From sequence record MN871451.1: 64,000 nucleotides of DNA; one strand, 5' to 3'. Below the pieces are notes generated by a model. It searched no databases. It saw only the letters and a list, made by a program, of their open reading frames with translations, and was not told the origin of the DNA. Of this stretch, positions 44,448-50,178 are shown piece after piece. The stretch's first letter is position 1; each line of letters opens with the position of its first letter. The position numbers and the translations under genes were made by a program.

Positions 44448-44606
44448 ATGAAAGAAAGTATACTTTTATTAATTGTCACGCTCATTGCGTTGCTTTGTTT
44501 CGGCGTCTCGTTACCGATGGCCATCCTTTACGGATTCGTCTCTGTGCTCGTCTGGTATATCGTTTCACCGTTCGCTCTGTTAGTCACCGTTACCTATTTA
44601 CCCTAA
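44448..44606 (+). CDS. 52-aa membrane microprotein (not in ORF track)
   Basis: GAGG RBS; MKESILLLIVTLIALLCFGVSLPMAILYGFVSVLVWYIVSPFALLVTVTYLP. Confidence 0.7.
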   Translation: MKESILLLIVTLIALLCFGVSLPMAILYGFVSVLVWYIVSPFALLVTVTYLP

Positions 44607-44621
44607 GAAGGAGAAATCATC

Positions 44622-44792
44622 ATGACTTACTTCATCGCATTAATTCTCACCCTGCTGATCTGCACCTTCTTTGAACTGACTATCATCCCAACACTTCTGG
44701 TAGCTTTCATAGCAGGGGCCGCCGGAGCGTTTTTAGAAGAGCAAACTAACAAAGCCAATTTCAACGCAACCCATTCACCGGAGGCGTTGTAA
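44622..44792 (+). CDS. 56-aa membrane microprotein (not in ORF track)
   Basis: AAGGAG RBS; MTYFIALILTLLICTFFELTIIPTLLVAFIAGAAGAFLEEQTNKANFNATHSPEAL. Confidence 0.75.
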   Translation: MTYFIALILTLLICTFFELTIIPTLLVAFIAGAAGAFLEEQTNKANFNATHSPEAL

Positions 44793-44911
44793 TGAAAACG
44801 TCTTTCGCGGTACTGGGGATTATTTCCTCGGTACTTATTCTTGACCTGGCTTTACTCCCGGCCTGCGTTTTCGCCGTCGCCGTAGGGAGTTACTTAAAAG
44901 CGGTCAAATAG
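44792..44911 (+). CDS. 39-aa membrane microprotein (not in ORF track)
   Basis: GGAGG RBS, TAATG coupling; MKTSFAVLGIISSVLILDLALLPACVFAVAVGSYLKAVK. Confidence 0.7.
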   Translation: MKTSFAVLGIISSVLILDLALLPACVFAVAVGSYLKAVK

Positions 44912-44991
44912 TAGTAAGCGCTGCCTCTCAACAGCGTGAGTAGTGCACTCTCACCCGTAGTTAAAATATTCAATTCAAAAGGTAAATTATC

Positions 44992-45279
44992 ATGGAAAAA
45001 ATCAAAGCGTTCTTCTCTTTCTCTTTCACTGAGAAAACCAAAGCAATCTTTGCTTTCATCACCGACACCCTGATCGTTGCCGCGCTGGCAATCTTCGCCG
45101 CGTTCTGCATGGCCACTGCCATGGAAGTGGCGGCCTACGCTTTTGCGGTCTTGGTTATCTTCAGCTATATTCACGATAGCTACAACAACCTCAAAACCGT
45201 CATTTCTCCTGCCACTGACGGCGAGACTGCGACTGACGCAGGCGAGACCGACGTCTCTGACGCAGCGGTAACCGCTTAA
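44992..45279 (+). CDS. two-TM membrane protein with acidic tail
   Basis: AAGGT RBS; 95 aa. Confidence 0.75.
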   Translation: MEKIKAFFSFSFTEKTKAIFAFITDTLIVAALAIFAAFCMATAMEVAAYAFAVLVIFSYIHDSYNNLKTVISPATDGETATDAGETDVSDAAVTA

Positions 45280-45359
45280 GTCGTCACCTCACCCTTGGCA
45301 CACGAGATAAGAAGGAAACGCCTTACGATAAGCTAAATTAAATTCTCACACTCTCAAAC

Positions 45360-45563
45360 CGTTATAAGACGATATTTCTCGTTACTCACCCGACACCTGT
45401 AATCGAGGCTGTGGCGTTGTACCTACTGACTCTTCCGAAATCGAGGAAAGATCAGAGTTCAGGGACAATAGCAGTAAACCCTCTTACTGGTTCGGTAGTT
45501 GCAGAACAAATGACAGGCTTCGCCGTCTGGTTCTGGACATCGCCGTATGCGACTCTTATAACG
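45360..45563 (+). ncRNA. candidate structured non-coding RNA
   Basis: Closing stem CGTTATAAGA/TCTTATAACG encloses four hairpins within a 335-nt gap lacking a convincing gene; strand assumed from context. Confidence 0.5.
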
Positions 45564-45614
45564 CAAACAACTCTCTCACATCTAAGTCTACTCTTAAAGT
45601 AAAAGGAAAAAATT

Positions 45615-45887
45615 ATGTTAATCTTTACTATCGTAATGGGCTTATTAGCAGCGATAGCGATTATCATTGCAGTTGCCGTTGATCGTAATAAGTTATTCGA
45701 TATCGAAAAACGCAATGAGATCATTAAAGGTTGCTACATCTTCTCTTGCTTGGTCGGTATCTCTGCTCTGTTGGGCTGCGCGTTTGTACCGTATTACGCA
45801 ATCCTCTTTATCTTCGTGCCTGTTTCCGCGTTGGTTTTTAAATACGTAATTGAAGTAGAGTTGGAAATTAATAACTATTGGTGCTAA
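45615..45887 (+). CDS. three-TM membrane protein
   Basis: AAGGA RBS. Confidence 0.7.
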   Translation: MLIFTIVMGLLAAIAIIIAVAVDRNKLFDIEKRNEIIKGCYIFSCLVGISALLGCAFVPYYAILFIFVPVSALVFKYVIEVELEINNYWC

Positions 45888-45960
45888 GTAAAAATTGTCG
45901 TCGTTGAGTTCGTAGTTAAACTTTAAAAACTTTGTTCGCTAAAAATAAGGAGATATAACC

Positions 45961-46269
45961 ATGACTTTTTTAATCATTTTTGCTATTCTTGTTGTCATTG
46001 GTTTACTCTGTAGTGCATTTTTTACCATATTCTACCGCGGTAAGGTTGACGCCGACGTCGTTACCGAAGAGGTAACGACCGAAGCAGTTTGTACTACCGA
46101 AGAAATTGTTAACGAAGAGCCAATTGTTAATGATGTTCTTTTCTACGGTGAACCAACGGAAAGACAAAAAGAAAAACACAAACGTCATCGTAACCGCCAT
46201 CGCGTGTCCGGCAAGAACCACCGCACATGGCACGATAAATTTGATGATGCTGACTACCAACCGCTTTAA
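45961..46269 (+). CDS. single-TM membrane protein with acidic and basic tail
   Basis: AAGGAG RBS; KEKHKRHRNRHR stretch. Confidence 0.75.
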   Translation: MTFLIIFAILVVIGLLCSAFFTIFYRGKVDADVVTEEVTTEAVCTTEEIVNEEPIVNDVLFYGEPTERQKEKHKRHRNRHRVSGKNHRTWHDKFDDADYQPL

Positions 46270-46289
46270 AACAAACCGAGAGATACTCC

Positions 46290-46598
46290 ATGGAAATCTA
46301 TCTGCTCATTTCTGTTGTTACCTTTACTGTCCTAGCGCTGATCACTTTCTTAACTTACCTCGCTAACAAAAAGTTAACTGTAAAGTGCGCAACACCAGAA
46401 GTCCTTTACGATAATTCCTGGAAAGGTCGCTCGATAAGAAAACTCCGTGATTGGACTTGTTTCTTAAGTAAAATCGGCTACCTGATCAGTCATGTCGCTT
46501 TCTGGATCATGCGCGCTGTTTTTCAAGGTTTCGTTTATCAGAAAACAAGCGAAGCAGTAGCTAGAGAATCGTTTCATTACCGTAATTACTGGTACTAG
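46290..46598 (+). CDS. membrane protein
   Basis: N-terminal TM segment; 102 aa. Confidence 0.65.
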   Translation: MEIYLLISVVTFTVLALITFLTYLANKKLTVKCATPEVLYDNSWKGRSIRKLRDWTCFLSKIGYLISHVAFWIMRAVFQGFVYQKTSEAVARESFHYRNYWY

Positions 46599-46666: not shown

Positions 46667-47137
46667 ATGAAAAAATTCATTGCTGCTTCACTCATCGCCC
46701 TGTCCTCTATCGCGTCCTTCAATGCCATGGCCATCGTCAATAATTGGACCGAATCTTATCAGCAGGGTACTCTGGAGTTCTACACCGAAAATAGCGACGG
46801 TTTCTCGCTCGCATTCTCTTGCCGCGATACTGGCGACCAATGGCCGGTTCAAGCGCTGTTTCTGAACGGTACTAATGGCAACTCGCTTTCCAGCGATGAT
46901 GATCGCTACGCGCTGGTTATCGAAATGGCCGGTCAGAAGTACCAGATGATCTCTCCTGCTTCTACAGTTGGGGCAAGTAACTGGCGCTTGTTCTTCGAAG
47001 GCGTTAAGAAAACCAAAGCAAAAACCGTTAAGGTTTACGTACAAGATCATCCGGAGACCTTCGTTGTTTTCTCAACCAACGGGCTCAAGAAAATCGTCGC
47101 CGAAAATAAAGGCGGTAACTGCTTCTATCTCGGCTAA
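46667..47137 (+). CDS. secreted/periplasmic protein with two Cys
   Basis: Signal peptide MKKFIAASLIALSSIASFNAMA; AAGG RBS; followed by a terminator. Confidence 0.78.
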   Translation: MKKFIAASLIALSSIASFNAMAIVNNWTESYQQGTLEFYTENSDGFSLAFSCRDTGDQWPVQALFLNGTNGNSLSSDDDRYALVIEMAGQKYQMISPASTVGASNWRLFFEGVKKTKAKTVKVYVQDHPETFVVFSTNGLKKIVAENKGGNCFYLG

Positions 47138-47250
47138 ACAAGTGGGTGGAGAGGGTAAACCCTCTCCGCTCCTAGATCTTTTTCTTTTTTAAGTTTATTC
47201 TGTCTTTCTTTGAGGCAAGCCGCCTAGAATAAAGAAAGGATAGCGTTACC

Positions 47251-47418
47251 ATGTCACAAACCACCCCTGAAAAGAAAGACGAAAGTCTGGATTTTGATTC
47301 ATTCACTCTGAGCGAAGAAGAAGCGGAATCGGCGTTAGCGAAAGCCGAAGCGTTTATCGAAGAACAACCCGAAATCGAAGCCAGCGATGACTGCGAAGGC
47401 GGGGCATGTAAAATTTAA
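47251..47418 (+). CDS. 55-aa acidic peptide ending in an NrdA-like redox tail CxxxxCKI (not in ORF track)
   Basis: AAAGGA RBS; MSQTTPEKKDESLDFDSFTLSEEEAESALAKAEAFIEEQPEIEASDDCEGGACKI; hairpins on both sides. Confidence 0.8.
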   Translation: MSQTTPEKKDESLDFDSFTLSEEEAESALAKAEAFIEEQPEIEASDDCEGGACKI

Positions 47419-47471
47419 TTCTAAGGGCGTTTTCGCCCTTATTTGTTTTGTTTCATGAAAGGGTATTCAAC

Positions 47472-49215: not shown

Positions 49216-50178
49216 ATGAATAATGAAATAATCGTTTATTACCACGACCTTTGCATGGACGGTTTCGCGGCAGCGGCAATCATGTATCAATATACAAGGC
49301 TGCAGACTTTCATCCCGGTAAACTACCGTGCTATGCCGGACTTAGAAAATGAGGAGCCGGTGCATATTGTTTTTGTCGATTTCACCCCACCGTTTGAATG
49401 GGTTGAGAAGAACGCGGCACGTATACGGTCTATCGTGATCCTCGATCATCATGCAGACAAAAAAGAAGAATGTGATAAGATCCAAAAATTCTTCGGGGCG
49501 ACGGTTGTTTATTTCGACACAGAACTTTCAGGGGCGGGTTTAGCATGGAAATATGTTAATTCTACCCCTATGCCAGAAGTGATTCGTTTAATCAATAACC
49601 GCGACCTCTGGATTGCAGAAGAGAGCGAACGGAATTACCACGAACTCTTTGTTCAGTATTTGAAGAAGGGGGATAAGGATGAAATTTTCCCACCTTTCAT
49701 TGAGTTGTTTAAATACAGCAAAGAACAAGTTGAAGAAATTCTCCGGCCGCAGGCCGAACTGTTAGTAAAAGGTCGAGATAAAAATATTGCGTTTCACCTG
49801 AATAAAGCAGTCATTATTGAAGAGGCGGCAGAAAGTCCTTTCTCAGTGGCGTATATTTCTGCTCCGTATTATTACGCTTCTGAAGCGGCCAGTACAATCA
49901 TGGCCCAAGACGACAAAGTTAATCTGGTCGTGAACGTAACGTTAAACCGGAACGGTCTCGGTTTGTCGTTCCGGTCACGCAAAGGGACAGGTTTGGCACA
50001 ACAGGCCGCGGTGCGATTTAACGGTGGAGGGCACGCTGAGGCTGCTGGCGGGGTCTTTGACCATCCTGTGCCTTTTACCGTGCTTCATGAGATGATTTTC
50101 TGCACTGATCCCCATGAGGCGTATCTTAACTTTTTACTCGATCAATACAGTGAACTGGGTACAAATAACAAAGGGTAA
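49216..50178 (+). CDS. DHH/DHHA1-family phosphoesterase
   Basis: YHDLCMDG, FVDF, ILDHH, LSGAGLAW, RDLW, SFRS and FNGGGHAEAAG motifs. Confidence 0.88.
   Translation: MNNEIIVYYHDLCMDGFAAAAIMYQYTRLQTFIPVNYRAMPDLENEEPVHIVFVDFTPPFEWVEKNAARIRSIVILDHHADKKEECDKIQKFFGATVVYFDTELSGAGLAWKYVNSTPMPEVIRLINNRDLWIAEESERNYHELFVQYLKKGDKDEIFPPFIELFKYSKEQVEEILRPQAELLVKGRDKNIAFHLNKAVIIEEAAESPFSVAYISAPYYYASEAASTIMAQDDKVNLVVNVTLNRNGLGLSFRSRKGTGLAQQAAVRFNGGGHAEAAGGVFDHPVPFTVLHEMIFCTDPHEAYLNFLLDQYSELGTNNKG

Follow-up and report, generated by a model that had tools for sequence, protein, structure and literature searches.

A small phage peptide ending in an NrdA-type redox tail: a possible portable arm for the host ribonucleotide reductase

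Ribonucleotide reductase (RNR) sets the supply of DNA precursors. Among systems that resemble the one described here, GrcA (YfiD) is a 'spare part' that reproduces, as a protein of its own, the C-terminal glycyl-radical segment of pyruvate formate-lyase, and the yeast proteins Sml1 and Spd1 are small disordered inhibitors that act on R1 and are linked to regeneration by its C-terminal tail. In RNR itself, the flexible tail of the alpha subunit swings into the active site, where its cysteine pair re-reduces the disulfide formed at each turnover, and is in its turn reduced by a redoxin, thioredoxin or glutaredoxin. For a place in the active-site pocket it has nucleotides and the beta tail as competitors (PMC11067019, PMC11903788), and work continues on the way in which it brings each turnover to completion (PMC11903788). 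The parts of the RNR redox relay are known to be modular, one case being a glutaredoxin (Grx) domain fused to NrdB (PMC6187632). Here we describe a phage-encoded peptide of 55 residues that ends in a copy of the alpha tail, its distribution among phages, and the roles that it may have.

A 55-residue peptide with an NrdA-type C-terminus

The window, by which we mean the whole stretch of 64 kb that was analysed, corresponds to the last 64 kb of MN871451 ('Serratia phage KpYy_2_45', host Klebsiella pneumoniae), to which it is 100% identical, and is 99.8% identical to Klebsiella phage KpLz-2_45 (NC_061418, Siatvirus, 296.7 kb). KpLz-2_45 carries the PhuZ tubulin and split RNA polymerase beta subunits, and its gp315 (L010:18438-20339, - strand), annotated as 'hypothetical', matches the chimallin family PF25677 with an E value of 2.7e-21; taken together, these three features indicate a nucleus-forming jumbo phage. 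Another product of this genome, gp176, matches phiKZ internal head proteins. The records MN871447-MN871453 hold several near-identical, unannotated genomes that are titled 'Serratia phage' and have Klebsiella pneumoniae in the host field. The features of the locus are as follows.

47146..47192, + strand: terminator-like hairpin with a 10-bp stem, loop TAAA and a T-rich run, which closes the upstream gene 46667-47137
47196..47242, + strand: conserved 5' leader with a weak predicted hairpin, CUUUCUUU pairing with AAAGAAAGG of the ribosome-binding site
47235-47240, + strand: ribosome-binding site AAAGGA, read from the sequence, with the ATG 10 nt downstream
47251..47418, + strand: free-standing module with the RNR alpha tail, 55 aa and stop; gp267, 'hypothetical protein', in NC_061418
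47287..47310, + strand: residues 13-20, acidic/hydrophobic motif (D-F-D-x-F-x-L type), common to the N-terminal halves of the family in alignments
47314..47364, + strand: residues 22-38, the sole predicted alpha-helix (linker), from AlphaFold2 (AF2) with a 53-sequence alignment
47386..47415, + strand: residues 46-55, NrdA-type tail, with Cys48 at 47392-47394 and Cys53 at 47407-47409; CX4C, K-I and stop
47422..47451, + strand: intrinsic-terminator-like hairpin and T-run, directly 3' of the stop codon

The open reading frame (ORF) at 47251-47418 (+ strand) starts with ATG, encodes 55 residues and ends in DDCEGGACKI followed by TAA. On its upstream side, the stem at 47146-47169 and the T-run after it fold with -24.3 kcal/mol (z -4.1), and on its downstream side the stem at 47422-47441 and its T-run fold with -13 kcal/mol (z -5.0); in each case 0 of 200 shuffled sequences were as stable. 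Pairing in the upstream stem is kept in phage FBKp24 through compensatory changes. The leader at 47196-47242 is also near-identical in FBKp24 despite divergence elsewhere, and its predicted hairpin might possibly sequester the ribosome-binding site, with a fold that is no better than that of shuffles (z -1.9 in the window, -0.6 in FBKp24). A repeated phage promoter motif was ruled out as an explanation of the leader by its single occurrence within the window.

The encoded peptide has 17 acidic and 4 basic residues. In the AF2 model built on the 53-sequence alignment, pLDDT is about 85 in the helix and 52-57 at both ends, and the peptide is accordingly predicted to be largely disordered apart from residues 22-38. 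The first-pass annotation, made from the letters of the window, had described a 55-residue ORF with an AAAGGA site and hairpins on both sides, had taken it for an expression unit of its own, and had expected an acidic and largely disordered product; the reading of the sequence, the fold statistics of both hairpins, the residue counts and the AF2 model agree with each of these points.

Six small ORFs (39-102 aa) at 44448-46598 (+ strand), hypothetical in the relative, have strongly hydrophobic stretches that look membrane-spanning. The gene at 46667-47137 (+ strand) encodes a 156-aa protein with a signal-peptide-like N-terminus, 70% identical in FBKp24 and with no Pfam match; its product, if exported, would be unusual for a lytic jumbo phage. 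At 49216-50178 (+ strand) lies a DHH/DHHA1 phosphoesterase gene, with Pfam matches below the curated cut-offs and the annotation DHH phosphoesterase in relatives.

When searched with blastn, the DNA of the tail leads to the 3' end of E. coli nrdA, which translates to ...DDDCESGACKI at the C-terminus. Conversely, when E. coli NrdA was compared with the whole phage genome by tblastn, the tail of the peptide was the best match and only NrdA residues 747-761 were aligned. Across 120 enterobacterial NrdA clusters the last 12 residues are mostly QDDGCESGACKI. NrdA of Klebsiella spp. ends in DD[DG]CESGACKI, and that of Pectobacterium and Brenneria ends in CEGGACKI, which is exactly the end of the phage peptide; against NrdA of Klebsiella and E. 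coli, 7 of the last 8 residues match, also at the C-terminus. By a rough estimate that assumes uniform composition, the chance of a match of at least 7 of 8 residues placed exactly at the C-terminus is about 6e-9 per ORF. The likeness to the CX4C tail of NrdA that had been recognised in the first reading is therefore upheld by blastn, by tblastn and by the actual NrdA C-termini. In some NrdA proteins (locus L042) it reaches about 17-30 residues further upstream, over an RDG...EVVE...SDC stretch, so that the 3' end of an nrdA gene looks like the source of the peptide's C-terminal half.

With phmmer, the peptide failed to retrieve NrdA from among the PDB sequences, the match being too short. PDB chain 1qfn_B is the isolated 25-residue tail of E. 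coli R1 as a chain of its own, in an entry which we take to be the mixed disulfide of this tail with glutaredoxin 1; a free tail would thus be a competent redoxin substrate.

Like the tail of class Ia RNR, the end of the peptide is a flexible C-terminal segment with a redox cysteine pair, spaced CX4C as in Enterobacterales. The ten-stranded catalytic barrel of NrdA (PF02867) with its active-site cysteines is absent, no Pfam match above noise being found in the 55-aa product, and a profile search with the whole module gave no protein of NrdA length among its matches. A redoxin of the thioredoxin fold, with CxxC within the fold, was not found in the peptide either, in which Pfam and NCBIfam gave no match and AF2 predicts a single helix. 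For the N-terminal motif, mimicry of the C-terminal alpha-binding peptide of NrdB was considered and ruled out: in ungapped BLOSUM comparisons with the last 8 NrdB residues it scored z 2.9-4.1 over shuffles and reversed controls scored z 3.6-7.4. Since the reversed NrdB tails score as well or better, this likeness is unspecific and reflects composition and pattern only.

Conservation and portability of the tail among phages

The peptide of the window recurs with 100% identity in 10 phage records. A tblastn search with this peptide gave small ORFs that share its end in 40 records, and one with the Miami peptide gave them in 86 records, from phages of Klebsiella, Erwinia (42 records), Dickeya, Serratia, Salmonella, Yersinia and Proteus; the annotated small-ORF matches among those listed are all called 'hypothetical protein'. 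A profile search of 5.8 billion proteins gave 57 clusters at 90% identity, 43-94 aa in length and without a functional name; an exhaustive HMMER search of 1.84 billion representatives gave 50 clusters at 50% identity, and matched P0001, 98% identical to the window's peptide, with an E value of 3e-13. Neither Pfam nor NCBIfam has a match for the peptide, and the PHROG families that overlap it (phrog_10239, 14561, 24014 and 38753) match weakly and are pieces of the same family without a functional annotation. A protein-guided scan of IMG/VR returned known isolates only and no further members, and a search of 8.4 million papers and preprints found neither the family nor the letters of the tail described.

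Members follow a common plan, in which an acidic/hydrophobic Phi-D-Phi motif and one helix are followed by E-x-x-E-[AP]-[ST]-[DN]-[DE]-C, a second cysteine, two residues and the stop. The window's peptide shows all of it: a length within 43-94 aa, the motif, the helix, the cysteine pair and the two-residue end. Both cysteines are invariant in 57 of 57 clusters, and the spacing between them is usually CX4C, sometimes CX3C or CX2C; an invariant pair with a varying spacing agrees with selection acting on a dithiol/disulfide and not on a fixed shape. The two residues after the second cysteine vary as well, with the endings KI, KL, II, EI, MI and SI. In the last 13 codons, window and Miami differ by 7 synonymous changes, AGC versus TCC serine codons included, and 1 nonsynonymous change, and window and FBKp24 by 3 synonymous and 0 nonsynonymous changes. 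That the codon changes of the tail are mostly synonymous indicates that the protein is under purifying selection. Conservation in related jumbo phages, which the first-pass annotation had suggested looking for by tblastn, is thus observed, with the ORF conserved and both cysteines present in every cluster.

Outside phages, the core of the module was found on a single 2.4 kb MAG contig among the genomes of 185,579 bacterial and archaeal species (one each), and from this near-absence in cells we conclude that the family belongs to phages. The distribution bears on a reading that does without RNR, namely that the peptide is the precursor of a modified peptide, that its cysteine pair binds metal, or that it is the decaying remnant of a captured nrdA 3' end. 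An acidic 'leader' ahead of a Cys-containing end does superficially resemble peptide precursors, and one tail-bearing protein (L026) has a zinc ribbon. However, no maturation enzymes and no conserved neighbours are found nearby, the neighbouring genes varying by genus and holding no domain of the kind expected beside a RiPP precursor; a remnant would not match NrdA tails so exactly or be so well conserved; and the near-confinement to phages counts against this reading as well, which we consider very improbable.

A conserved partner gene beside the peptide was looked for and rejected, because neighbours differ between genera; the same holds for an HD/MYG1-like phosphohydrolase, which lies upstream in Miami and in the ENA contig L056 and is not general. 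On this 325 kb contig, a 47-aa family member starts one base after a MYG1-like (PF03690) gene (L056:9097-10144), and RND efflux pump genes and a nucleoside 2-deoxyribosyltransferase-like gene are also present.

Expression of a family member could be assessed in one published transcriptome, that of phage phiR1-37. Its gene g117 (L004:2989-3144) is annotated with a ribosome-binding site and a terminator of its own, and a sigma-type promoter ahead of it is marked in the RNA-seq supplement. Only 1-4 reads were assigned to g117, versus hundreds to tens of thousands for most of its neighbours; the neighbouring g116 likewise has 1-4 reads. The RNA had been purified on silica columns, which may lose a transcript of about 200 nt, so the low count for g117 is weak evidence in either direction.

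The tail is a portable element. When IMG/VR was scanned for the pattern of the tail followed by a stop codon, 30 loci were obtained, only 4 of which are a real nrdA adjoining nrdB; the others encode small peptides, or proteins of 123-372 aa with the tail at their end. In the exhaustive search, the whole module stands at the C-terminus of larger proteins in 13 of 50 clusters. The N-terminal parts that precede the module or tail fall into at least nine unrelated groups, one of them being the N4 gp49/Sf6 gp66 domain (PF13876). For the other fused domains no Pfam, PHROG or fold match was found, the AF2 model of family B (pLDDT 74) giving no fold match in the PDB, and no homologues of the fused domains were found in the window's phage or in PCH45. 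PF13876 proteins with an NrdA-type tail are encoded at L048:1193-1582 and L049:448-867, on IMG/VR contigs of about 70 kb.

A further case is Klyazma, an unrelated Klebsiella podophage of 50 kb, in which a 61-aa protein (L060:29494-29679, - strand) bears the tail; its last 10 residues are 100% identical to the E. coli NrdA query. The 61-aa protein is also present in the Klebsiella podophages KpnP_VR7901 and Asterion; a homologue in Citrobacter phage CVT22 aligns with it up to a point short of the tail. The Klyazma gene follows an endonuclease gene and is placed two genes downstream of that for the DNA polymerase. The tail has thus been grafted onto different scaffolds, and the same tail on unrelated scaffolds is the signature of a short functional motif.

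Such a distribution would also be expected if the tail were an address label or adaptor that recruits a binder of the NrdA C-terminus (a redoxin, NrdA or another protein) to the N-terminal part as its cargo; the cargo in Klyazma could then be the replication machinery, and the free-standing peptides would be the minimal form. The variety of at least nine unrelated N-terminal domains, PF13876 included, and the place of the Klyazma gene near that of the DNA polymerase speak for it. So does one N-terminal domain family (P0179, P0181, P0182 and P0187) that is entirely without cysteine, for which the tail cannot serve as a redox arm in cis. Nevertheless, the free-standing forms have little else to anchor, the window's phage and PCH45, which carry such a form, are without homologues of the fused domains, no conserved partner gene is found nearby, and the tail binds its known partners transiently and is not a stable tether; we hold this reading to be improbable.

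RNR genes of tail-bearing phages and candidate roles of the peptide

The 64-kb window holds no nrdA body, as the first-pass annotation had stated and as tblastn confirmed. In the whole KpLz-2_45 genome, neither the annotation nor tblastn with E. coli NrdA and NrdB revealed nrdA, nrdB or another RNR, and a Pfam scan of its ten largest unannotated proteins revealed no RNR domain of any class. RNR content was checked in three complete tail-bearing genomes, KpLz-2_45, Klyazma and PCH45, and nrdA is absent from all three. Klyazma has no RNR in its complete genome. In Serratia phage PCH45 (MN334766) the peptide is accompanied by an nrdB (L053:24783-25889) with 80% identity to that of E. coli, and nrdA is found nowhere in the 212.8 kb of the genome.

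These results decide the fate of a proposal of the earlier annotation, in which the peptide was the arm of a split RNR, supplied in trans to a tail-less NrdA encoded elsewhere in the phage genome. Although the tail is genuine and split phage nrdA genes exist, for example in Aeromonas phage Aeh1, no NrdA of any form, tail-less or truncated, was found in the whole of NC_061418; this 297 kb relative, 99.8% identical to the window, has neither nrdA nor nrdB, its ten largest unannotated proteins are free of RNR domains, and PCH45 and Klyazma are without nrdA too. The split enzyme is thereby refuted by sequence for the window's phage, and we assign it a negligible probability.

Other phages also carry host-like nrdB genes (73-76% identity), many of them nucleus-forming (Ea35-70, RAY, AH04, OBP, Kc263 and pEt-SU) and some of them 52 kb phages like phiEcoM-GJ1. 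None of these phages appears among the 60 best NrdA matches, and their nrdB genes may be orphan beta subunits that pair with the host alpha.

KpLz-2_45 encodes thymidylate synthase, DHFR, dUTPase, thymidylate kinase (tmk) and thymidine kinase (tdk), and also PRPP synthetase and NAD-salvage enzymes. As no RNR is found in this near-identical genome, the phage depends on the host for this step: it remodels nucleotide supply, yet must use host ribonucleotide reduction. Given the wide distribution of the tail, a booster of host RNR and a decoy for Trx/Grx, both named as alternatives in the first-pass annotation, become the main candidates.

Considering that: (i) the tail-bearing phages that were checked are without nrdA, (ii) PCH45 has added a beta subunit, and (iii) the cysteine pair is invariant while its spacing varies, we tentatively favour the view that the peptide is a trans-acting mimic of the host NrdA tail in the relay of re-reduction from redoxin to RNR, and a booster rather than a blocker of it, although we rate this at somewhat under an even chance. 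The peptide would be made in infected cells and reduced by host redoxins, as is the genuine tail; it would then serve host NrdA in trans as one more arm for re-reduction, and host RNR turnover would be raised when phage DNA synthesis needs it. It retains what both exchanges require, that is, two cysteines, an acidic flank and a free C-terminus. With the peptide and a host-like nrdB and no nrdA, PCH45 is already investing in the activity of the host alpha subunit. However, NrdA's own tail acts in cis at a far higher local concentration, so the gain from a tail in trans is unproven.

The module is anchored to RNR by its tail alone, and the features listed above would also suit a competitor that blocks re-reduction. 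A free tail could compete with that of NrdA for Trx/Grx or for the active-site pocket, and host RNR would be slowed or redoxins tied up in the manner of yeast Sml1. The sequence evidence for tail mimicry is the same for this reading, the protein is small, acidic and, by the model, disordered like known RNR regulators, and grafting onto many scaffolds is typical of motif mimicry. On the other hand, the checked phages, being without nrdA, need host RNR for genomes of 50-300 kb, and the host-like nrdB of PCH45 points to more, not less, host RNR activity. Moreover, a plug needs no universal cysteine pair with a spacing that is free to vary, and a decoy that becomes reduced is no lasting sink for redoxins. 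We therefore regard inhibition as unlikely, though less so than the adaptor.

Returning to the trans-acting arm, the presence of the tail, alone or fused, in many phages suggests a use in tapping the host's supply of DNA precursors. In its general form, which we put forward with more reserve than the mechanism for the single peptide, the proposal is that phages without RNR encode a portable 'swinging arm', a copy of that of the host RNR, with which they provide the host enzyme in trans. If true, a virus would add an element of the catalytic relay to a host enzyme while encoding neither the enzyme nor an inhibitor, and the 10-residue tail, borne by at least nine unrelated phage proteins, would serve viruses as a general handle on the redoxin-RNR relay of the host. 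A natural, conserved tail that stands free would demonstrate that this half-reaction is accessible to help or disturbance from outside the enzyme, and would explain how large phages that have no RNR or only nrdB meet their dNTP demand. The tail is, besides, a clear example of phages imitating a short motif of a host enzyme. It also gives a testable idea for a 'hypothetical protein' found in at least 86 phage genomes. Many of these genomes are those of phages of Klebsiella, Erwinia and Dickeya, hosts whose phages are often considered for therapy or biocontrol.

Comparison with described systems

The closest relative is the tail of E. coli NrdA itself (residues about 737-761), which has in common with the peptide the last 8-11 residues, the CX4C pair followed by two residues, the acidic flank and the disorder. 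Unlike it, the phage peptide is joined to no RNR body, and its upstream 35-40 residues, with the acidic motif and the helix, have no counterpart in NrdA.

GrcA offers a likeness of another kind: a large radical enzyme has its functional C-terminal segment duplicated in a small, separate protein, which is able to act on the enzyme in trans. GrcA, however, is cellular and folded and replaces a damaged segment, whereas the phage peptide is viral and predicted to be disordered, and the host enzyme keeps its own tail. Sml1 and Spd1 resemble the peptide in being small, disordered and directed at R1, but have no redox cysteine pair copied from R1; no sequence relation between them and the peptide was found (no Pfam match).

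Aeromonas phage Aeh1 is alike in that the large subunit of a phage RNR exists as separate polypeptides; Aeh1 has both halves of nrdA, while the phage of the window is without any other part of it. The Grx-NrdB fusion of Facklamia ignava (PMC6187632) shows that parts of the relay still work after moving between polypeptides; there the redoxin has moved onto beta, whereas in the phages the alpha tail is detached and carried by a virus. The RNR redox tail is thus an element of a known kind, and what is new is its detachment from the enzyme and its carriage by viruses.
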